In this document: positions 2,935 to 59,400 of the stretch, in pieces
How the letters are laid out: every line of letters starts with the position of its first letter
How positions within the stretch are numbered: the stretch's first letter is position 1
From: Podarcis pityusensis
Lineage: Eukaryota
NCBI GenBank assembly: GCA_964106645.2
Contig: OZ067038.1
Length of the DNA stretch: 64,000 nt
Direction: 5' to 3' (one strand)
The notes under the pieces: generated by a model
What the model was told of the DNA's origin: nothing
The model's input: only the letters and a program-made list of their open reading frames with translations
The model's database searches: none
Position numbers and translations under genes: made by a program

Positions 2935-5900
2935 TCATAGAATCATAGAATCATAGAAGAGTTGGAAGAGACCACAAGGGCCATCGAGTCCAACCCCCTG
3001 CCAAGCAGGAAACACCATCAGAGCACTCCTGACATATGGTTGTCAAGCCTCTGCTTAAAGACCTCCAAAGAAGGAGACTCCACCACACTCTTTGGCAGCA
3101 AATTCCACTGTCGGACAGCTCTTACTGTCAGGAAGTTCTTCCTAATGTTTAGGCGGAATCTTCTTTCTTGTAGTTTGGATCCATTGCTCCGTGTCCGCTT
3201 CTCTGGAGCAGCAGAAAACAACCTTTCTCCCTCCTCTATGTGACATCCTTTTATATATTTGAACATGGCTATCATATCACCCCTTAACCTCCTCTTCTCC
3301 AGGCTAAACATGCCCAGCTCCCTTGGCCGTTCCTCATAAGGCATCGTTTCCAGGCCTTTGACCATTTTGGTTGCCCTCCTCTGGACACGTTCCAGTTTGT
3401 CAGTGTCCTTCTTGAACTGTGGTGCCCAGAACTGGACACAGTACTCCAGGTGAGGTCTGACCAGAGCAGAATACAGTGGCACTATTACTTCCCTTGATCT
3501 AGATGCTATACTCCTATTGATGCAGCCCAGAATTGCATTGGCTTTTTTAGCTGCCGCGTCACACTGTTGGCTCATGTCAAGTTTGTGGTCAACCAAGACT
3601 CCTAGATCCTTTTCATATGTACTGCTCTCAAGCCAGGTGTCCCCCATCTTGTATTTGTGCCTCTCATTTTTTTTTTTGCCCAAGTGCAATACTTTACATT
3701 TCTCCCTGTTCAAATTCATCTTGTTTGTTTTGGCCCAGTTCTCTAATCTGTCAAGGTCGTTTTGAAGTGTGATCCTGTCCTCTGGGGTGTTAGCCACCCC
3801 TTCCAGTTTGGTGTCATCTGCAAATTTGATCAGGATGCCCTTGAATCCATCATCCAAGTCGTTGATAAAGATGTTGAATAAGACCGGGCCCAAGACAGAA
3901 CCCTGTGGCACCCCACTAGTCACTCTTCTCCAGGATGAAGAGGAACCATTGATGAGCACCCTTTGGGTTCGGTCAGTCAGCCAGTTACAAATCCACTGAG
4001 TGGTAGCATAGTCAAGACCGCATTTTACCAGCTTCTTTACAAGAATATCATGGGGCACCTTGTCAAATGCCTTGCTGAAATCAAGGTAGGCTACATCCAC
4101 TGCGTTCCCTTCATCTACCAGGCTTGTAATTCTGTCAAAAAACGAGATCAGGTTAGTCTGACATGACTTATTTTTCAGAAATCCATGCTGACTATTGGTG
4201 ATCACAGCATTCCTTTCTAGGTGCCAGAATCTTCCCTGGTATTGATGTCAGACTGACTGGGCAGTAATTATTTGGGTCCTCTCTTTTCCCCTTTTTGAAA
4301 ATAGGGACAACATTTGCCCTCCTCCAGTCTGCCGGGACTTCGCCTGTTCTCCAGGAATTCTCAAAGATGACTGCCAGTGGTTCTGAGATCACATCTGCCA
4401 GTTCTTTTAATACTCTTGGATGCAGTTCATCTGGCCCTGGAGACTTGAATACATCTACACTAGCCAAGTATTCTTGTACTATCTCCTTAGTTATTCTGGG
4501 CTGTGTTTCCTCTGCTGAATCATTTGCTCCAAATTCTTCAGGTCGGGCATTGTTTTCTTTATCAGAGAAGACTGAGGCAAAGAAGGCATCGAGGAGTTCA
4601 GCCCTTTCTGTGTCCCCTGTTTGCATTTCACCATCTTCTCCTCTGAGTGACCCCACTGTTTCTTTGTTCTTCCTTTTGCTACGAACATACCCATAAAAGC
4701 CTTTTTTGTTGCTTTTAACCTCTCTAGCAAGCCTGAGTTCATTCTGTGCTTTAGCTTTTCTGACTTTGTGTCTACACGTGCTGGCTATTTGTTTGAATTC
4801 CTCTTTGGTGGTTTCCCCCCTTTTCCATTTTTTGTACACATCCTTTTTTAATCTTAACTCAGTTAAACGTTCTTTAGATAGCCACCCTGGCTTCTTTAGG
4901 CACCTTCCATGTTTCCGTCTCATCGGTATTGCCTGACGTTGTGCTTTTACTATCTCCCTCTTAACAAACTCCCAGCCATCATGAACTCCCTTTCCTTTTA
5001 GTATTACTGTCCATGGGATCTCACCCAGCACTTCCCTAAGTTTTATGAAGTTGGCTTTCTTAAAGTCAAGAAATTGAGTCCTAGTATGCTTGGCTGCTCC
5101 TTTCCGCTGTATAGTAAACTTCAGAAGAGCATGATCACTCGCGCCTAATGATCCTTCCACTTCTACCCCACTAACCAGGTCATCAACATTGGTTAGGACC
5201 AGATCTAAAATGGCTGTTCCTCTTGTTGCTTCTCCCACTTTCTGGACAATGAAGTTGTCTGCAAGGCCAGTGAGGAATCTGTTTGACCTTATGCTCTTGG
5301 CTGAGTTTGACATCCAACAAATATCCGGGTAATTGAAGTCCCCCATTACTACTATCTCCCTTCCTTTTGCATGCTTGGCCATCTGTTCCAGGAAGGCATC
5401 ATCTATGTCCTCCGTTTGGCTTGGGGATCTATAGTAAACTCCCACAATGAGGTCACTGTTATTCTTCTCTCCCTTAATTTTGACCCAAATGCTCTCACTT
5501 TGGCTTTGAGGTTCTAAATCTTGGATCTCTTCACAGGCATACACATCCCTGACATATAACGCCACTCCTCCTCCTTTCTTGTCTGGTCTGTTTCTCTGAA
5601 ATAGATTGTATCCCCCCATTATTACATTCCAATCGTGGGACTTATCCCACCAGGTTTCAGTGATGCCTATTATGTCATATTTAGTTTGCTGTACCAAGAG
5701 CTCAAGCTCATCTTGTTTATTTCCCATGCTTTGCGCATTAGTGTACAGACATTGGAGTCCATTAATCATTCCCCCGTGACTCTTATTTAAGGATTTTTTC
5801 CACCCACCACTAGGTCTGCGTGCTGTTTACTCCATTTGGTCTATGATATTTGGATGATCATCAATTGATAGACTCCTACCTTCAGGAGCACTGTCTCCCT

Positions 5901-34426: not shown

Positions 34427-37400
34427 ATAGAATAGAATCATAGAGTTGGAAGAGACCGCAAGGGCCATCGAGTCCAACCCCCTGCCAAGCAGGAAACACC
34501 ATCAGAGCACTCCTGACATATGGTTGTCAAGCCTCTGCTTAAAGACCTCCAAAGAAGGAGACTCCACCACACTCCTTGGCAGCAAATTCCACTGTCGAAC
34601 AGCTCTTACTGTCAGGAAGTTCTTCCTAATGTTTAGGTGGAATCTTCTTTCTTGTAGTTTGGATCCATTGCTCCGTGTCCGCTTCTCTGGAGCAGCAGAA
34701 AACAACCTTTCTCCCTCCTCTATGTGACATCCTTTTATATATTTGAACATGGCTATCATATCACCCCTTAACCTCCTCTTCTCCAGGCTAAACATGCCCA
34801 GCTCCCTTAGCCGTTCCTCATAAGGCATCGTTTCCAGGCCTTTGACCATTTTGGTTGCCCTCCTCTGGACACGTTCCAGTTTGTCAGTGTCCTTCTTGAA
34901 CTGTGGTGCCCAGAACTGGACACAGTACTCCAGGTGAGGTCTGACCAGAGCAGAATACAGTGGCACTATTACTTCCCTTGATCTAGATGCTATACTCCTA
35001 TTGATGCAGCCCAGAATTGCATTGGCTTTTTTAGCTGCCGCGTCACACTGTTGGCTCATGTCAAGTTTGTGGTCAACCAAGACTCCTAGATCCTTTTCAC
35101 ATGTACTGCTCTCAAGCCAGGTGTCACCCATCTTGTATTTGTGCCTCTCATTTTTTTTGCCCAAGGGCAATACTTTACATTTCTCCCTGTTAAAATTCAT
35201 CTTGTTTGTTTTGGCCCAGTTCTGTAATCTGTCAAGGTCGTTTTGAAGTGTGATCCTGTCCTCTGGGGTGTTAGCAACCCCTCCCAGTTTGGTGTCATCT
35301 GCAAATTTGATCAGGATGCCCTTGAGTCCATCATCCAAGTCGTTGATAAAGATGTTGCATAAGACCGGGCCCAAGACAGAACCCTGTGGCACCCCACTAG
35401 TCACTCTTCTCCAGGATGAAGAGGAACCATTGATGAGCACCCTTTGGGTTCGGTCAGTCAGCCAGTTACAAATCCACTGAGTGGTAGCATAGTCAAGACC
35501 GCATTTTACCAGCTTCTTTACAAGAATATCATGGGGCACCTTGTCAAATGCCTTGCTGAAATCATCCTTTTTTAATCTTAAGTCAGTTAAAAGTTCTTTA
35601 GATAGCCACCCTGGCTTCTTTAGGCACCTTCCATGTTTCCGTCTCATTGGTATTGCCTGAAGTTGTGCTTTTAATATCTCCCTCTTAACAAACTCCCAGC
35701 CATCATGAACTCCCTTTCCTTTTAGTATTACTGTCCATGGGATCTCACCCAGCACTTCCCTAAGTTTTATGAAGTCGGCTTTCTTAAAGTCAAGAAATTG
35801 AGTCCTAGTATGCTTGGTTGCTCCTTTCCGCTGTATAGTAAACTTCGGAAGAGCATGATCACTCGCGCCTAGTGATCCTTCCACTTCTACCCCACTAACC
35901 AGGTCATCAACATTGGTTAGGACCAGATCTAAAATGGCTGTTCCTCTTGTTGCTTCTCCCACTTTCTGGACAATGAAGTTGTCTGCAAGGCCAGTGAGGA
36001 ATCTGTTTGACCTTATGCTCTTGGCTGAGTTTGACATCCAACAAATATCCGGGTAATTGAAGTCCCCCATTACTACTATCTCCCTTCCTTTTGCATGCTT
36101 GTCCATCTGTTCCAGGAAGGCATCATCTATGTCCTCCGTTTGGCTTGGGGATCTATAGTAAACTCCCACAATGAGGTCACTGTTATTCTTCTCTCCCTTA
36201 ATTTTGACCCAAATGCTCTCACTTTGGCTTTGAGGTTCTAAATCTTGGATCTCTTCACAGGTATACACATCCCTGACATATAACGCCACTCCTCCTCCTT
36301 TCTTGTCTGGTCTGTTTCTCTGAAAGAGATTGTATCCCTCCATTATTACATTCCAATCGTGGGACTTATCCCACCAGGTTTCAGTGATGCCTATTATGTC
36401 ATATTTAGTTTGCTGTACCAAGAGCTCAAGCTCATCTTGTTTATTTCCCATGCTTTGTGCATTAGTGTATAGACATTGAAGTCTATTAATCATTCCCCCG
36501 TGTCTCTTATTTAAGGATTTTTTCCTCCCACCACTAGGTCCGCGTGCTGTTTGCTCCATTTGGTCTATGACAATTGGATGATCATCTTCATCAATTGATA
36601 GACTCCTACCTTCAGGAGCACTGTCTCCCTCCCCCACATTAGTCAGTTTAAAGCCCTCCTGATGAGGTTTCTGAGATTTTTGGCAAAAACCTTCCTCCCA
36701 ACCGTTGTGAGGTGCAGCCCATCGCTTGCCAGAAGTCCATCTTCAAGAAACTGCAGTCGTGATCTAAGAATCCAAACCGTTCCTGTTTACACCATTTGCG
36801 AAGCCAGCTGTTCACTTCCACTATTTTTCCCTCTCTCCCTGGGCCACGTCGTTCAACTGGGAGGACAGATGAGATGACAATTTGTGCATTTAATTGCTTC
36901 AATTTCCTGCCCAGAGCCTTGTAGTCTCTTTTGATCTTCTGGAGGCTATTGCTTGCAGTGCATTGGTTCCCACACGAAGCAAGAGGAAGGGGTATTTGTC
37001 AGTGGGTTTTATGATTCCTTGCAGTCGTTCAGTTACATCTTGGATCTTAGCCCCAGGGAGACAGCAGACTTCCCGAGACATCTTGTCAGGCCCAGAGATC
37101 ACTGCTTCTGTTCCCCTCAGTAGGGAATCCCCTATCACCACTACACGCCTCCTCTTAGGTTTGGTCGGGGTTCTTCCGTGAGCTGTCCGTTCCAAGGTCG
37201 CCTGCACATTCACTGAGGGCTGACTTTGCTGCTCGTCTTCATATACCTGATCGACTGTAATGAGGGAGAGATCTTCAAATGGAGTCTGCTCTTCGTCTTC
37301 CATGCTAGGGGAGAGGACCTCAAAGCGATTGTGTATTTCTAAACAATCAGAGCGAACCCTGGGCCTCCTACTTCTTTGAGTCACGTTTCTCCATATATCT

Positions 37401-49847: not shown

Positions 49848-50333
49848 AACAAAGCCCTATACGGCCTAGGACCCTCGTACCTACGGGACCGCCTCTCCTG
49901 GTATGCCCCACAGAGGAACCTACGGTCTGCAAATAAAAACATCCTGAAGGTCCCAGGCCTCAGAGAGGTTAGGCTGGCCTCAACTAGAGCCAGGGCTTTC
50001 TCGGCTGCGGCTCCAATCTGGTGGAATGCTCTGTCACAAGAGACTAGGGCCCTGCGGGACCTGACATCTTTCCGCAAGGCCTGCAAGACAGAGTTGTTCC
50101 GCCAGGCCTTTGGTCAGGGCCCAGCCTGACTCCCACCTCCGGCAACCTGCACAGAACTTTGCTTAACGGTTGCCATTAATTTGATTTTAATTAATTTTTA
50201 TAATGAAATGTTTTAGAATGTTGGATTATTTGATTGTTTGATTATTTGTTTGTTGTTAGCCGCCCTGAGCCTGGCTTTGGCTGGGGAGGGCGGGATATAA
50301 ATAAAATTTATTATTATTATTATTATTATTATT
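49848..50333 (+). mobile_element. L2 LINE 3' fragment nested in the L1
   Basis: KALYGLGPSYLRDRL...RAFSAAAPIWWNAL...FRKACKTELFRQAF (L2 ORF2 C-terminus), 3' stem-loop, (TTA)n tail. Confidence 0.9.
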
Positions 50334-51140
50334 CAAAAACCATATTGTTAGGAAAGCATTGTTTAATGTTTGGATAAGATATAAAGATTTATTGGAAAAT
50401 AAAAGAGTAGCGTTGGCAAAGGCAGACTGAGGCATTCAGCAGATGTGCATGAGTTCGGGGAATGTGCCCCAGACCACAGCTTCTTCCAGCAAATGCCAGG
50501 CCCGAGCTGTGGGCAGAGGTTGATTTAAGCACCTGCCTTCCCACCCAGCACTTCAAATGGCAGCTACCAAGCAGCTACCCACTCTGCTCCCAGTTCGGAG
50601 CACCAGGTAGGGGGCGCGGCCAACCCAACATGGCGACGAAGGTAGTTACTAAGTAATTTCGTTTACCCTCATCAAAGTCTTACGTGGTTTTAAGCGGTTT
50701 TATCCTCCTTTGTTTTTATCCGAGAGTTTTAATGATCTGCTGGTTGTGCTGGCTGTCTTTTAATCTCGCTCCACTTGTGTTATTTTGTTTTATCTGGGTT
50801 GTTCCGACCCCCCCGGACTCGCCGCCACGCTGCCGCCGCCTCCCTAACTGGGAGAGATAAGTGAAAAGTTTCCTGGGCATAAATCCTCTGCCCGGTCAAC
50901 CAGCTATTTTCTTTTAGCTGTTAGCTTACTGCATATTGCGAAGTGAAGTTTGCCCGACTGCTGGAACCGGGCTGTTTCAAAAATCCTAGGAATAAGGAAG
51001 AGGGGAAGGAAGAGGCTTGAACTGGAGTAATTTTACGGCACCACTCTCCTGGAAGTGGTAGTATTCCTGTGAGGAAGACTAAAGGACTTAAGGAGCTCCC
51101 CAGCACAGTGCCCACGTCGGTTCCCCTGCAAAATTGATTT

Positions 51141-52997
51141 ATGGGCCATGGAAAACACCCAAGAGACCCTGACGAGGCATTATCCTCTCCGAGGCCTAAG
51201 CAATCAAGGAAGGGTTTACCTAAAGGTGGGAGAGGCCCCGAGGAATGTATCTACTCAATAGCAATTCAAAATCGTTTCGATCCTCTAACGGCCCTTGAAA
51301 CAACATCAAAAGATGAGGCCCCTGAGACGCTACAAATTGGAAAAGCCAATGGTAACACAAATGGGGATGGTCCCTATCCGAAGGAGGTGTTGGTAGCCGA
51401 ATCTGCGGACTGCACAGGTTGTGAGCAACTCCATCTAATAATTAGAACTCTAAACTGTATATTTAAGAGAATTGATGGCCTATCCTCTCAGCTGCATAGC
51501 CTTCAGCAAAAACTGGATGACCAGCCGGTACAGACAGCCCAAGATGGGGCAGTAGATGTTCCATTGTGCCGGCAGAAAGCGCCACCAAACACTGATCGTA
51601 TGAAGAACTGCAAATATAATCTCAACCCCTCACTGAATCGCCAATCCCTGACTCTACATCCAAGGAAGATTTCCCTAACCTTCCGGGAAAGGGACCCAAG
51701 TTGGGCAACGCTACATGGGACTAAAGAGCACCTCAGATGGCTTCTAAAACTTGAGACATCACAAATAGATCTTTGTGCTGTGCTTCCCTTAATCCAACAG
51801 AACAGATATCAGAGAATGATGCTGGCTTTCCACTCTGCAAAAATCCCCTCTCTTATTATTAAGCAAAAAGTGTTTTTGAATAGTCTTGGCATTTTTCCAA
51901 CGAGAGTCTTCATGGATTCCATAATTAGACCCCTCCTATCGGAGGGATTAATCAAGGAGACAGCACAACCCTCCCATCCTGAACCACAAAAGAGGGCTGA
52001 GCTGCACACCCCATGTCTGGGCCAGTTCCAAAATGCCTCCACTCCTACAACTAAACACTACGATTGTGCCAGTAACTCTCTGACACCCCAGGAGGAAAGA
52101 GAGCTTATCGCCTCCTTTGGAGAGTTACCAGCGATGGAACAACAAGAAATTATAAATAGGCTAGACTTACTTAAACTTCAGCTCCTAAGTATTGCCTGCA
52201 ATGGAGTTTCTACGAATAATATCCACTCTAATTTAGCGGTGCCATGCCCCATGGAGGTGGAAACAGCAATTCCCCAATACCCAGCATATAAGGTGCCTTC
52301 TGCATTGGATGGGAAGGCCTCACTGCTGAAGGCAGACTCTTCTCCTCCCCTTCACGTTGGTAACTCATCTCTGCTGCTAATAGACTTATCTGTTCCCTCC
52401 GTGACTAACCGATCAAAGAATGGAACTCAGGATAACACCCCCCTGGATAAATCGTTGTCCCTTCATTCCTCCATGCCGGACTTGGAATCAACATACATCG
52501 AAGACCATCCACGACCTGAGACGGCAGTGGCCACTCCAAGTCAGGCTTCTTCAGAGCACTCTTGTCCACCAAAAATCCAACAATTACGTGAGGAAGACAC
52601 TACGGTGTCGAGAGTCACCACAGAGTGGATTGAAGACCCAGCAGGTCATATAAATCAAAGGATCACAAGTGTACCGGTTAGATCCCCAAAGAGGACGGCT
52701 CCAGCGGACTTGGCAGGAGCCTCTTCAGAGCCTAGTTGGGCCCGACAGCTAAAAACGCCAAATATTATCCCTACCCACCAGGATGCTAACTCTCTTCTGC
52801 CCCCCAAAAATTCTGGCCCTCGTGAGTCGATCGTGCCACAACCGGCTCGCATTAGAGCAAAAGACTCCCCACAACCGGTGTGCACCAGAGCAAAAGACTC
52901 ACCACACCAGGACGACAACTTTCAGCAAAGGAAAATAACGGACTTCTTTAAGGGAGCGTCCTGGTCGCATAAGAGCCCCCCACAAGAATTTAAATGA
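51141..52997 (+). CDS. ORF1 of the RTE-X-like LINE (618 aa)
   Basis: Uninterrupted ATG-TGA ORF; NRFDPL motif, CxxC plus heptad/coiled-coil, low-complexity P/S/T-rich C-half, terminal QRKITDFF. Confidence 0.85.
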   Translation: MGHGKHPRDPDEALSSPRPKQSRKGLPKGGRGPEECIYSIAIQNRFDPLTALETTSKDEAPETLQIGKANGNTNGDGPYPKEVLVAESADCTGCEQLHLIIRTLNCIFKRIDGLSSQLHSLQQKLDDQPVQTAQDGAVDVPLCRQKAPPNTDRMKNCKYNLNPSLNRQSLTLHPRKISLTFRERDPSWATLHGTKEHLRWLLKLETSQIDLCAVLPLIQQNRYQRMMLAFHSAKIPSLIIKQKVFLNSLGIFPTRVFMDSIIRPLLSEGLIKETAQPSHPEPQKRAELHTPCLGQFQNASTPTTKHYDCASNSLTPQEERELIASFGELPAMEQQEIINRLDLLKLQLLSIACNGVSTNNIHSNLAVPCPMEVETAIPQYPAYKVPSALDGKASLLKADSSPPLHVGNSSLLLIDLSVPSVTNRSKNGTQDNTPLDKSLSLHSSMPDLESTYIEDHPRPETAVATPSQASSEHSCPPKIQQLREEDTTVSRVTTEWIEDPAGHINQRITSVPVRSPKRTAPADLAGASSEPSWARQLKTPNIIPTHQDANSLLPPKNSGPRESIVPQPARIRAKDSPQPVCTRAKDSPHQDDNFQQRKITDFFKGASWSHKSPPQEFK

Positions 52998-55900
52998 CGG
53001 TTAGCCGGACAATCCAGAAAACCACCAATATCGATCCTCTGTTGGAACATAGCTGGCTGGCGTAGGAAAAAATGTGACCCAGAATTCCAGTCGTATATCA
53101 ACTCGTTTCATATCATTCTATTGCAAGAAACTTGGGAGGAGGGTGAAATTGTCATAAACGGATTCGACCTATTATCCCTTCCAGCTTACCCCTCCCAGAA
53201 AGGAGGACGGCCGAAAGGTGGTCTAGTAATTGGTATCTCACTGAAGCTGCATTTCAAATTTTCACTAGTTTTGATTGCTCCCCCTTATGCTTTATCTGGG
53301 TTGATGTCGGGGGGAAAAGTATCACTGCTAATCTCTAATGTCTACCTCCCGCCAGGGGGTTCATCCCTTGAACTGCATGATAGATGGGAAATATTAGAAG
53401 ATCATTTAGTATCATGCCGAGTCAAATATGCCAATAGCCAATTCTTAATTGGTGGTGACTTCAACGCACGTATAGCAGCAAATTGGGCTGATTTAACTAA
53501 AGCAAAATGGTGGACTGCTCCATGCCTTGACAATTATGATTCGAGACATGCCTTAGGGAGAGCCTCAAAAGACTCTAAAGTAAACGAGGCTGGAGTACTT
53601 CTTTACCAGATGGCTATTCGCTTAAACTTAGAACCCCTGAATGGCTGCTGCCCTCCTGATATACCGGGGGAGTATACCCACCTAGGCATAAAATCAAACA
53701 GTGTACTAGATTACCTTTTAGCCTCGAGTGACCTGATTTCGAAAGCTCTCTCTTTTAAGATTGGCAATATTCACTATAGTGATCACCTTCCACTTGCTGC
53801 TACGTTTGACCTAGACTGGCACGGGGACGAGCACGGTCATCTAACTCAATTAGATACTAATGCAGAAAACCCGGTAGAGGGTATTAATACGGCATTACGA
53901 GTGAAGGGTATAAAGTGGTCTGTAACGCAGGCTCAAAAATATTCTGAATTTTTTCAGCAGGAGATCATACAAACCTATTCAGCCCTTGGCATAACTTCAT
54001 ATGATCACGATCAAACTATTAATCTATTTGCCAATCTGTTGAATGACCTCACGTCATTCTTTTCTGTCCCAACCCACCAGGCAAATTGGGCCCACCCCAA
54101 GATAGGTGCACCGTGGTTTAACCGTAATTGCAAACAAGCCAAACAACACCTTTGTGCTATTTATAATGATTACAAATCCTCAGGGGCGATTACGCTTCCC
54201 AAGGAGTACTACCAGGCAAAATCTGCTTACAAATATGTGCAGAAAAATGCTAAACAGGAATGGCAATTGAACCGCTGGCAAGCACTTATAGCTGCCTCAA
54301 GTACCCGTAATTCCCGAAAATTCTGGCTGTTGGTTAACAGAAAATCTAAAAGATACCCCTTAACAGTTATTCCTGCCCCAATTTGGGAATCCTTTCTAAG
54401 GAATTATTTTGCCTTACCAGACCTTAATATTAATACAATCGATGGAGTCTATGAGCAGCTCCCTCTTTGGCCACCCACTGACCCGGAAGAAATCCACGGA
54501 CTTATTTCTAATCTTAAAATCGGAAAAGCCCCCGGTCCTGATCTAGTCCCGGCAGAAGCTATAAAACTTCATGCTGACTGGTGGGCGAAAATCTTGGCTG
54601 CTACCTTTGATGCCGTAAACAACAGTGGGAAGGTACCAAGAATATGGAAGGATGCGATTATTGTTCCAATTCATAAAAAAGGCTCGACAGATGACCCGGG
54701 AAATTACAGGAATATCAGTTTATTGTCATTAATTGGGAAAATATATGCACGGTTCTTGTTAACTAAGCTTACTAAGTGGGCCGAAGAGAACAACCTGATT
54801 GGGCCTGAACAGGCTGGTTTTAGACCGAATCAGTCAGCGGTTGATCAGGTCTTAGTTTTATACCACCTTGCCCGGAAATACTCCTCCCCAAATAGAGGCC
54901 AACTTTGTGCGGCCTTTATTGATTTAAAGGCCGCTTTTGACAGCATCCCCAGAGGACTGCTTTGGGGAAAACTAGCCCGATGGGGAATAGACAAAAGACT
55001 ATTGTGGCTAATAACTAAATTGCATGACGGATCGGCCGCTAGGGTGAGAATCACTCCGGCAGGCGACCTCTCAAACTCAGTAGCTATCAATAGAGGTGTT
55101 CGCCAAGGATGTATCCTTGCTCCGACCCTTTTTAATCTATTTATAAGTGATATGAGGGCGCCTCTGATAGAGGCTCAAGAAACGATCCACGCCCCCCGTC
55201 TTGCCCAATATCGTTGCCCCCTTCTACTCTACGCAGACGACGCAGTGATCCTATCCTTTTCAAGAGTCGGCCTTAGGAGGGCATTAAAAATCTTCGATGT
55301 TTACTGCAAATCAAATTTTCTTACAATTAACCATGTTAAGTCCAAAGTCCTAATTTTCACCAAGAGTCGAAAAACCTATAATTGGAGAATAGACGGAAAA
55401 GCTATTGACCAAGTCTTTAAATTTCAGTACTTGGGAGTCTTTCTCCAACACAACATGGGCTGGAAGGTCCATGTTGCATATGTATTAAACAGAGCTAAAG
55501 CCCTTTCCTATGCGCTATTGCGTTTTTTCTTTTCAGATGGGGCTTTCCATATTCCATCAGTGTTAAAAGTTTTCAAGGCAAAGGTGATTGCAACAATAGC
55601 ATATGCAGTCCCATTATGGGGGTCCTTTGCTAATCTAACCCATTTGGAGGTAATCCAAAACCAGTTTTTAAAAAGGTTGTTAAAATTACCCAGGTGTGTA
55701 AGCAATACTGCTATACGACTGGAACTAAATGTTACATCTCTAGAAACCACATTATGGAAATGCATCCTCTGTTACTGGTTGGCTTTATGGCATAAACTTC
55801 CAAATCTCCACTTGATACAATGCCTCTGGAGAGATGACTTCCCTAGCCCCTGGGCAAAAATAATACATGGGAAACTTGTGTCCCTAGGACTATCTCCATC

Positions 55901-56438
55901 TGAACTATTAAAACTGGATTTAACTTTGGCCAAAAGAATTATAACCCACAAATTAGAGGAGATGGATTTACAATTTAACATTGCGACAGGTGGTGGCACC
56001 TGTTCGCCGATAAACCTTGGCTTAACACCACCAACGAAACTTCCATCTTACTTAACTACCTTATCTGTGGTGACGCACAGGTATGCCTTTATAATGGCTA
56101 GATTCAATGCTTTCCCATCAAACGTGTTGGGTAACAGACTCTCCAACGGACAGATCTCACTCCTCTGTGACTGTAAAAGCGGATCTATAGAATCGTTATA
56201 TCATATAATCTTCTGTTGTCCATTACATTCGGCTTCACGGTCCAAGTTTCTGGCCCCATATTTATCGAGAATTGCGGACAGTCCTCAGGAAGCCCAAATA
56301 ATATACTTATTAAACGACGAAGATACAAGTAGATCCCTTGCAATCGCTAGATATCTGAGTAATGTTTTATTTCAAAAGAGGAGAAATGGATCACTGCGTG
56401 TTTCTGACAGCTTAGCTAAACTTAAGAACTATCAATAA
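52998..56438 (+). CDS. ORF2 of the RTE-X-like LINE: APE endonuclease, reverse transcriptase, C-terminal zinc knuckle (1146 codons, no AUG start)
   Basis: Open from the codon after the ORF1 stop: RLAGQSRKPPISILCWNIAGW...LLQETW, GDFN, SVLDY, SDHLP, GKAPGPD, QAGFR, FIDLKAAFD, LLYADD, YLG. Confidence 0.93.
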   Translation, partial: RLAGQSRKPPISILCWNIAGWRRKKCDPEFQSYINSFHIILLQETWEEGEIVINGFDLLSLPAYPSQKGGRPKGGLVIGISLKLHFKFSLVLIAPPYALSGLMSGGKVSLLISNVYLPPGGSSLELHDRWEILEDHLVSCRVKYANSQFLIGGDFNARIAANWADLTKAKWWTAPCLDNYDSRHALGRASKDSKVNEAGVLLYQMAIRLNLEPLNGCCPPDIPGEYTHLGIKSNSVLDYLLASSDLISKALSFKIGNIHYSDHLPLAATFDLDWHGDEHGHLTQLDTNAENPVEGINTALRVKGIKWSVTQAQKYSEFFQQEIIQTYSALGITSYDHDQTINLFANLLNDLTSFFSVPTHQANWAHPKIGAPWFNRNCKQAKQHLCAIYNDYKSSGAITLPKEYYQAKSAYKYVQKNAKQEWQLNRWQALIAASSTRNSRKFWLLVNRKSKRYPLTVIPAPIWESFLRNYFALPDLNINTIDGVYEQLPLWPPTDPEEIHGLISNLKIGKAPGPDLVPAEAIKLHADWWAKILAATFDAVNNSGKVPRIWKDAIIVPIHKKGSTDDPGNYRNISLLSLIGKIYARFLLTKLTKWAEENNLIGPEQAGFRPNQSAVDQVLVLYHLARKYSSPNRGQLCAAFIDLKAAFDSIPRGLLWGKLARWGIDKRLLWLITKLHDGSAARVRITPAGDLSNSVAINRGVRQGCILAPTLFNLFISDMRAPLIEAQETIHAPRLAQYRCPLLLYADDAVILSFSRVGLRRALKIFDVYCKSNFLTINHVKSKVLIFTKSRKTYNWRIDGKAIDQVFKFQYLGVFLQHNMGWKVHVAYVLNRAKALSYALLRFFFSDGAFHIPSVLKVFKAKVIATIAYAVPLWGSFANLTHLEVIQNQFLKRLLKLPRCVSNTAIRLELNVTSLETTLWKCILCYWLALWHKLPNLHLIQCLWRDDFPSPWAKIIHGKLVSLGLSPSELLKLDLTLAKRIITHKLEEMDLQFNIATGGGTCSPINLGLTPPTKLPSYLTTLSVVTHRYAFIMARFNAFPSNVLGNRLSNGQISLLCDCKSGSIESLYHIIFCCPLHSASRSKFLAPYLSRIADSPQEAQIIYLLNDEDTSRSLAIARYLSNVLFQKRRNGSLRVSDSLAKLKNYQ

Positions 56439-59400
56439 GTGCCAGAACTGACACGTATACCCCCCAAAATCTGATGGATCGGAATTGCGGTTTACATAGA
56501 GGGAGCTTATTGTGTATAGTGTTTACTTAACTAAAGTAAAATTGGTTTTATAAGGGTGTTTTAACTTGGAACTGTTTAAATTGTATTGTTTATGGATAAA
56601 TTCTGATGTATTGTCTTCGATATGGGCCAATGGCCGCAATAAATCAAATTCAATTCATTGGAAAATAAAACCCCAAGGTGGTTGTCACCAATGGAAGCAA
56701 AAGCTCTGAAAAGGCTCAATATGGAGGCCAAATGGCCTACATATTGGGAAATTTTGGAGCAAGAAGGAGACAAATTGAAATTGCAGAGTTTCGAGAAACT
56801 AAAAAATAAAGTGAGAGATTGGCTTCATTATTATCAGATAATGGAGGCATATAATTTGGATAAGAAAATTGGCTTCCAGGTGGAAAAGTCAAAATTAGAA
56901 ACAGAATTGCTAGAACCCAAAACTAAAAATCTGTCAAGAATGTATAACTTGCTGTTGAAATGGAATACTCAGGATGAAACGGTGAAATCTGCTATGATTA
57001 AATGGGCACAAGATGTTGGACATAATATTATGTTTGCTGACTGGGAACAGTTATGGACCACAGGTATGAAGTTTACGGCATGTAATGCCTTAAGAGAGAA
57101 TATTATGAAAATGATATACAGGTGGTACATGACCCCAGCCAAGCTTGCAAAAATTTATCATTTGCCCGATAATAAATGTTGGAAATGTAAAGAAACTGAA
57201 GGTACATTCTTTCACCTTTGGTGGACGTGCCCAAAGATCAAGGCTTTCTGGGAAATGATATATAATGAACTGAAAAAGGTATTTAAATATACCTTTCTGA
57301 AGAAACCAGAGGCCTTTCTTTTGGGCATTGTCGGCCAATTGGTGACAAAGAAGGATAGAACCTTTTTTATGTATGCCACAACAGCAGCAAGAATACTCAT
57401 CGCAAAGTATTGGAAGACACAAGATCTACCCACTTTGGAAGAATGGCAGATGAAGGTGATTGACTACATGGAATTGGCGGAAATGACTGGCAGAATCCGA
57501 GACCAGGGAGAAGAGTCGGTGAAAGAAGACTGGAAGAAATTTAAAGACTATTTACAGAAATATTACAAAATTAAGGAATCTTAGAAGGATGTTGGATAGA
57601 AACTAAGAGGTTTTTAGCTGTAATGCCTTAAGAGATATGAAAAAAAAAGTTAACAATTGGGTAAAAGTTTAATGGTAAGGATTTGCTGAACTAACAAACT
57701 GAACTGGAATACAAAGAAGGGAGGTATGAGGAGGTTCGGGGAAATAAGTGCAAGGAAGATAGGTTATGGAAAATTAATGTGTTTTTAATTGTTTTATTTT
57801 GTATGTTTCTCTTTATACTTTTTTCTTTATTTTGTATTTTCATGTATCTTTTTGAAACTTTAATAAATATTATTTTTAAAAAAAACAAAACCTTGGGAAG
57901 GGGCCAAAAATGTAGTCAATGTGGGAATATATGCATGATGACGTGATTTCAGGGCATATATATTAGGAGGCGGAGCAACATGGTTCCAGTATTACAAATG
58001 TTCTCAGGGTGTGGATGTAGAGACAAAAACCACAGAACAATGGCAGTTGGACTGAGGTTGCTCAATGCTTATCAGTCCAGTTTGATTTTTAAACTAGAAT
58101 AGCTGACAGGAAAGGGGGGGGAGCAGGGGGCGAGCATTCCCTCTCCTTTCTTCTTCCTGCCAAGTTTGCTCTTTGGAGGCTCATGTTGGTTCACTCGATT
58201 GGTTCTGACGTTTCACAAGCTCTAGAATAAGCTGCAATTACAGTAATGAGATCGGGGCAAATATTGTTTGTCTCCTTGCCTCAAGGAGACAGGTTATAAC
58301 TGCTTTCGTCTAGAGGAACCTCATTCAAAAGATGACTTGTCAGGATATGTCAGGACCCATTAAAATGGTGGGAGATGTAAACCAACAACAATCCTCACTC
58401 TCGTCTCTTTCAGCACACATAGCTATAACTTCTTAGGTCTGGGTCACGTAAACATTTAAAGAAGTTGAAATAATACATTGGAGCCAAGCAGCACATAAAT
58501 AAGGCGGAACTGGTGATTTGTGGGAGTAATATAAAGAACAGCAAATAAATATCTCACATTATGCTTCTGAGGGCATTTAATACTTGCTTTTTTTGCACTT
58601 CTGCGAAAATGTATTATGTTTAGACGCTTATAAAGTTCTCCCCAGCTGAAGTTCTCCCTAGATATTTGGGTCCCAAGTTACCTGATCTTATGTGCCAAGT
58701 GGCACTTCTGAAATTTTCCCATTTTTAATTTCATATTTTGTTTAGATTACTGCACATGAACAGATTGCTAGTCTTCAGTCATGTCCTTTGTATCTTGCAG
58801 GTTACTGATGCACCTGAGTGCCTGTGCAGATTGTGATGCAATTGTGATGCATTCACATGATCAGAACAAGATTCTGTTTGAGCGGCATTTTCATCAATGT
58901 GTGCTTGTACATACAAGTAAACTTAGAAGGGGAAAATCTATGAACTGAAAACTGTACCTGGGCCAATTCTGAAAAGTATTTTAAAAATTCTCCTATTCGT
59001 GTGACTAATGTGCATCTATAAAGTCCACACGGGAGTGGCGCTACGGCTGGAGATCCCACCTGCATGCAACAGATGAGGTGCCGTTATTGTGGTGCCTTCC
59101 AAATGTTGGTAAACTCCAGCTCCCACTGGTCATGCAGGCTGGAGCTGATGGGAAGTAGAGTTCAATAAAATCTGTTGGGCACAATGTTTGCTATCCCTTC
59201 ATTAAAGTGTGTGCAAACTGTGTAAGCTTGGCTACACAGTCAGTGGACCTGTCCCCCCCCCCCCCCCGGGTCCCTGACTGTGCATACAGAGTCTATGTGC
59301 ACAGTTTATATGCAAACTGGTATATTCTAATAGTCTACCACATATGCATAGTACAAAGTGGGGTCTGACACAAGGATCCCCAAACACACAAATGCATACA

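Follow-up and report, generated by a model that had tools for sequence, protein, structure and literature searches.

How the second open reading frame (ORF2) of a bicistronic long interspersed nuclear element (LINE) is translated is a long-standing open question. In human LINE-1 (L1), according to reviews, ORF2 is made independently of its AUG and in connection with termination of ORF1, by a mechanism still called unknown, and in the silkworm element SART1 the translation of ORF2 is coupled to the ORF1 stop. Among RNA viruses, UGA followed by CGG is a documented context for type II stop-codon readthrough (PMC3159437). We describe here a LINE in a 64,000-nt stretch of DNA from Podarcis pityusensis (GenBank assembly GCA_964106645.2, contig OZ067038.1; hereafter the window), in which ORF1 and ORF2 share one frame and are separated by a single UGA-CGG, and in which no AUG precedes the endonuclease (EN) at the start of ORF2. 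Such a natural family without an ORF2 AUG makes the question testable. We find that the arrangement is common to the family, and we propose, giving the idea a little less than an even chance, that readthrough of the UGA yields a fusion of the ORF1 and ORF2 proteins (ORF1p and ORF2p) of 1765 amino acids.

The element, at 50405-56652, is a complete, recent insertion of a young, multi-copy LINE family of lacertid lizards with an apurinic/apyrimidinic endonuclease (APE-type LINE; Table 1). A reading made from the sequence alone had placed ORF1 at 51141-52997, ending in AAA-TGA, with the same frame open as far as 56438, and these coordinates were reproduced. The codons after the TGA are CGG TTA GCC, and there is no second stop for 1146 codons, until the TAA at 56436-56438; the readthrough product would thus have 618+1+1146 = 1765 residues. 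That the TGA-CGG is a readthrough context was likewise borne out, since it matches the definition of type II sites (PMC3159437), with A at both -1 and -2. Of the extended context xxA-stop-CGx-xxx-xxG, the LINE has the A at -1 and the CGx and lacks the last G, the third codon being GCC. The shared frame with its single stop, and the UGA-CGG context with no in-frame ATG before residue 103, both speak for readthrough.

The endonuclease begins almost immediately after the stop. Its motif starts 13 codons past the end of ORF1, and Pfam Exo_endo_phos covers residues 16-263 of the post-stop frame. W16-N17 and Q43-E44-T45-W46 all precede the first in-frame ATG, as the sequence-only reading had pointed out in placing the EN start upstream of 53304. 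Because the WN and QETW motifs, nearly invariant in relatives (Q43, E44 and W46 are the residues named in alignment A1), lie ahead of this ATG, initiation at an AUG would remove catalytic motifs. Further downstream, the reverse transcriptase (RT) domain matches the structures of L1 ORF2p and R2 in the PDB.

Whether this arrangement is a family trait or damage to one copy was judged from Logan contigs of four organisms (A, B, C and E), compared directly with positions 52000-54200 of the window. The contigs show presence and majority sequence, and the between-lineage differences counted here are the 40 best-supported ones. The contig of organism A (52000-53195, k-mer depth about 258) has nine differences and no gaps, all at or before 52674, and 52675-53195 equals the window at every base, including the TGA, the run of four As and the ATA codon at 53028-53030. 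That of organism B (52771-53289, depth 176) has six differences and no gaps; five are among those listed, all outside 52882-53188, and the sixth probably lies within about 30 nt of a contig end. For organisms C (about 96% identity) and E (about 93%) the comparison covers indels only, and their contigs cross the junction without one. In addition, the two ORF1 relatives found, P0121 and P0122, both end in exactly ...PQEFK, as ORF1 does. The stop and its context are thus kept among relatives, within the family only.

These contigs do not simply record the locus in the window. At 12 places (e.g. 52222, 52318, 53297 and 53542) the contigs of all four organisms share one base that the window lacks, so they represent the abundant form of the family, from which the window copy departs by about 0.5% through private changes. 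The contig depths in the three DNA runs, about 100-330 at a run size of about 1.3 billion letters, suggest that the family numbers roughly a hundred copies or more. Judged from these contigs, an ORF2 without an AUG behind an in-frame TGA is the architecture of the family and the majority state in at least two organisms. The in-frame UGA is therefore carried by a very successful family, which again favours readthrough. As a separate observation, the most abundant contig of organism C lacks one base at 53315, breaking ORF2, and the commonest form in that organism may be defective.

The same comparison bears on two further explanations. An ATG overlaps the stop (ATGA), opening, as had been said of it, another frame of 23 codons that ends at 53063-53065. 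Coupling of the UAAUG/AUGA kind is known in SART1 and in viruses, and ribosomes might restart at the AUG at 52994 with a +1 shift, or the true element might have one A fewer at 53018-53021. The latter had been suggested by the sequence-only reading, with an indel in this copy, and is refuted by the contigs: the A4 run and the TGA do not vary between the window and organisms A and B, and there is no indel in C or E. Moreover, the AUG at 52994 is out of frame, its ORF ends behind the WN motif, and no known +1 shift signal was recognised, which leaves this explanation very improbable. We give hardly any credence to the second explanation, in which splicing, or A-to-I editing that turns UGA into UGG, removes the stop from the RNA. 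Nothing direct speaks for it, although the run of organism E may be RNA, a guess from its label; the contigs report no joint except the skipping of one 33-nt repeat unit, and no stable duplex surrounds the stop.

ORF2 bears the marks of a translated protein. Six of the seven between-lineage differences listed in the EN domain are synonymous, the frame of organism E is intact over 1194 nt at 93% identity with no indel, and ahead of the first ATG the protein and its relatives correspond residue for residue (alignment A1). By these measures ORF2 is under purifying selection, and the EN N-terminus is made, on a transcript without an AUG to start it. With no AUG ahead of EN, ORF2 must then be translated by a non-canonical route. 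The alternative is that the family no longer makes ORF2p, an ATG-to-ATA change having silenced ORF2, and that its copies either predate this change or owe their origin to the enzyme of a related subfamily acting in trans. An ATG-bearing sister subfamily does exist, and the deletion in organism C implies that defective lineages spread. However, the synonymous bias and the intact frame of organism E are hard to square with silencing, the ATA and the TGA are common to the high-depth contigs of two organisms, and two relatives that seemingly lack a start as well (P0002 and P0003) keep ORF2s of about 1090 amino acids. LINEs, in addition, prefer acting in cis. We therefore regard silencing as unlikely.

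In the readthrough that we propose, most ribosomes would terminate at the UGA and release the 618-residue ORF1p; a minority, possibly of the order of one percent, would decode the UGA by a near-cognate tRNA and continue, producing a fusion in the order ORF1p, linker, EN and RT, as a device that sets a Gag-Pol-like ratio. The fusion would also place the element's sole PIP-like motif beside the endonuclease. This motif, QRKITDFF, is the only match to Q..[ILMV]..[FYW][FYW] in ORF1 or ORF2, is invariant in P0121 and P0122, and would sit 27 residues ahead of the EN domain. It is possible, if still short of probable, that a group of squamate LINEs gave up the ORF2 start codon altogether and makes EN and RT only as a readthrough extension of ORF1p, with the PCNA-binding-type motif delivered by the fusion. 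The linker ...SRKPPISILCWN resembles the translated N-terminus ...HKRPAIKFLSWN of P0009, which lends readthrough slight support; word searches found no uninterrupted ORF1-ORF2 fusion among relatives of at least 35% identity.

ORF1 itself is an orphan. No Pfam domain was found in it, its AlphaFold2 model has a mean pLDDT of 29.8 and is unusable, and the best ESM Atlas score, 0.81, is a lead at most. Its only relatives found, P0121 (92% identity) and P0122 (88%), come from Logan assemblies, and its C-terminal half counts 13 synonymous and 20 non-synonymous changes among the between-lineage differences listed. A 15-nt in-frame deletion at 52550-52564, removing SEHSC, is shared by P0121, P0122 and the contigs of organisms C and E, and by this distribution it is the mark of a sub-lineage. 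The 33-nt tandem repeat in ORF1, of which one unit is skipped in the contig of organism E, is the only locally structured spot near the junction (z = -2.75).

Several results weigh against readthrough, and the first concerns RNA structure. A 3' stem-loop had been put forward as a stimulator, and the named stem does form: when a 68-nt piece is folded, the minimum-energy structure (-15.9 kcal/mol) pairs about 53000-53008 with 53054-53062 and has an inner 5-bp helix. This fold is no more stable than shuffled sequence (z = -0.71), a 126-nt piece takes a different fold (z = +0.84), sliding windows of 120 and 200 nt, from a start of 52920 onwards, never fall below a z of about -0.7, and no Rfam match was found. 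The local stem also begins 2-3 nt past the stop, while known readthrough stimulators lie 7-12 nt downstream of it, at the entrance of the ribosome (PMC3159437). With the UGA in the A site, such a stem would already be unwound. The stem is thus real as a local fold and finds no support as a stimulator. Not every type II site needs a stem (PMC3159437). Two further points are of a general kind. ORF1-ORF2 readthrough in a LINE was not found in the literature searched, outside which many subscription journals lie, and the features of the junction were picked post hoc from a scan of very many windows. Finally, since human L1 makes its ORF2 without depending on the AUG, a missing AUG does not in itself require readthrough.

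The relatives of ORF2 add a further point on this side. The closest ORF2 proteins (P0001-P0007, from Logan/ENA and Podarcis) are 59-69% identical, and part of ORF2 is matched at 99% identity by the Podarcis lilfordi protein P0126, which marks the host as a lacertid of the wall-lizard type. In the tree, ((P0004,P0005),(P0003,((P0001,P0123),(window,P0002)))), the window pairs with P0002. The N-terminus reads ISILCWNIAGW in the window, MSFLCWNIAGW in P0001 and MLFLCWNIAGW in P0123, a Zootoca vivipara gene model of NCBI (XP_034996355), so that this sister subfamily has its own ORF2 ATG where the window family has ATA at 53028-53030. We take the first M of P0123 to be a true ATG, as is the usual practice of NCBI eukaryotic gene models. 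P0008, P0010, P0011 and most LINE ORF2s among the matches listed likewise have an M a few residues ahead of WN. In P0002, the nearest relative, and in P0003 the protein is called from the TTG of LLQETW, as it is in the window, and a P. lilfordi model of the P0003 type (P0124) starts at an internal Met, which suggests that several lacertid subfamilies are without an ORF2 start ahead of EN. The missing start in P0002 and P0003 counts on the side of readthrough.

Given that relatives start ORF2 with their own M, separate initiation is the ancestral habit, and the present family might still use it, starting at a non-AUG codon. In this L1-like termination-reinitiation, or non-AUG initiation, ribosomes would stop at the UGA and restart nearby to make a separate ORF2p of about 1135 amino acids. 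The likeliest site is the AUA at 53028-53030, 30 nt downstream, precisely where P0123 and P0001 have their ATG, and the short distance from stop to restart, the behaviour of L1 and SART1 set out above and the lack of a detectable stimulating structure all suit this route. In that case chance alone would account for the shared frame and the CGG: a 1-in-3 chance for the frame combined with a rare TGA-CGG, together about 0.18% (for in frame, TGA and CGG or CTA, at the window's own base composition). AUA is also a weak near-cognate start, here with C at -3, and the 98 nt before the stop (52900-52997) hold no UGGGA, motif 1 of the calicivirus termination upstream ribosome-binding site (TURBS). Reinitiation after an ORF of 618 codons is, besides, normally inefficient without special signals. 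We judge this route somewhat less likely than readthrough. The gag-pol-like strategy of the sequence-only reading thus stands in its architecture and its UGA-CGG, both real and family-wide, and has lost its stem-loop.

The insertion itself is well delimited. The LINE at 50405-56652 is flanked by a target-site duplication (TSD) of 14-18 nt, as expected from integration made by EN, and interrupts an older L1-like ORF2 fragment whose frame, ...YKDLLENK before the element and LENKTPRW... after it, continues across the duplication. The halves of this C-terminal fragment lie at 50305-50404 and 56658-57584. Just upstream of it, 50219-50333 contains a GC-rich segment and (TTA)8 besides a 16-nt tandem repeat, perhaps the end of a different repeat. 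No further copy of the family occurs in the window; distant reverse-transcriptase fragments of other LINE families, with 24-38% identity to ORF2, occur at 3297-4500 and 34781-35563, both on the minus strand. The element is assigned to the APE-type LINEs by its Pfam domains (PF03372/PF14529 and PF00078), its PDB matches, the TSD and its many copies. A guess that it belongs to the Vingi clade was not supported: descriptions of Vingi-1 make it compact, with a single ORF, and the listed length of Vingi-2_Gav is 3128 bp, as against the 6.2 kb and two ORFs seen here. RNase H is carried by the more distant ORF2 matches.

Table 1. Features of the LINE and its insertion site (window coordinates)
Feature	Position	Strand	Remarks
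Left target-site duplication, ATT[T/C]ATTGGAAAATAAAA	50387..50404	+	Repeat family D4, spacing 6266; host L1-like frame runs across the duplication
5' untranslated region (UTR), about 736 nt	50405..51140	+	Between TSD and ORF1 ATG; UTR by position
ORF1, 618 aa, orphan protein, C-terminal half fast-evolving	51141..52997	+	Stop TGA 52995-52997
33-nt tandem repeat, 2.2 units, inside ORF1	52836..52906	+	Encodes PQPARIRAKDS / PQPVCTRAKDS
PIP-box-like motif QRKITDFF	52926..52949	+	15 aa ahead of ORF1 stop
Stop context AAA-TGA-CGG, stop 52995-52997	52992..53000	+	Fits type II xxA-UGA-CGx
Out-of-frame 23-codon ORF from ATGA overlap (ATG 52994)	52994..53065	+	Stop 53063-53065; not the ORF2 frame
ORF2 frame, 1146 codons + TAA	52998..56438	+	
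Linker RLAGQSRKPP, 10 codons, open, without ATG/GTG/TTG	52998..53027	+	
ATA codon at the position of the sister subfamily's ORF2 ATG	53028..53030	+	Alignment A1
APE-type endonuclease domain	53043..53786	+	Pfam PF03372 and PF14529
First in-frame ATG after the stop, residue 103, within EN domain	53304..53306	+	
Reverse transcriptase domain	54669..55439	+	Pfam RVT_1 (PF00078), E = 7e-35, residues 558-814
C-terminal Cys/His motif CDC...H....CC	56166..56219	+	Cys and His columns nearly invariant in alignment A1
3' UTR, 214 nt, ends AATAAATCAAATTCAATTC	56439..56652	+	Without poly(A) tail
Right target-site duplication	56653..56670	+	

Comparison with described systems places this family between several of them. 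Its nearest kin, the sister subfamily of P0001 and P0123, has an ORF2 that is 62-69% identical and the same xLCWNIAGW at the EN N-terminus, and stands as sister to the pair of the window and P0002. Human L1 resembles it in having a bicistronic RNA with a short distance between the ORFs and an ORF2 that can be made without AUG, but L1 keeps its ORF2 AUG and a 63-nt spacer, whereas the lizard family has no AUG and a single in-frame stop, and its RT shows only distant kinship to L1 ORF2p (E about 1e-25). In SART1 the stop and AUG overlap at the end of ORF1 (UAAUG), as they do here; unlike in SART1-type coupling, the overlapping AUG lies outside the ORF2 frame. The calicivirus arrangement differs too, in that TURBS-type coupling relies on a motif missing here, there being no TGGGA in the 98 nt ahead of the stop. 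The Candida element Zorro3 was considered as a precedent with a single UGA and set aside, because four in-phase stops are present in it and its ORF2 ATG is required; the element with the UGA is Tca2, which has long terminal repeats (LTRs).

The closest likeness at the stop itself is to the viral type II sites, namely alphavirus nsP3/nsP4, the replicases of tobra-, peclu-, furo- and pomoviruses and coltivirus VP9/VP9' (PMC3159437). These share with the LINE the UGA-CGG, the A before the stop and a polymerase that lies in frame downstream and is made as a minor fusion. They differ in that they usually carry a stem of 10-12 bp after a spacer of 7-12 nt, where no stable structure was found in the LINE and its local stem starts 2-3 nt past the stop, and in having xxG as the third downstream codon, where the LINE has GCC; and they belong to RNA viruses, whereas the LINE is a cellular retrotransposon.

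Lizard and fish APE-type LINEs are under development as gene-insertion tools, so there is practical value in knowing how the dose of the enzyme is set. In murine leukaemia virus (MuLV) the ratio of Gag to Pol is set by leaky termination, and the layout is like that of the LINE: a structural or RNA-binding protein, one in-frame stop and then the enzyme. The LINE differs from MuLV in that its stop is UGA-CGG and that it has no protease to release the enzyme. If readthrough is indeed used, the family would provide the first case of Gag-Pol-type readthrough among non-LTR retrotransposons. LINEs would then share the Gag-Pol logic of retroviruses, and a fusion of ORF1p with ORF2p would offer a physical explanation for their cis preference.

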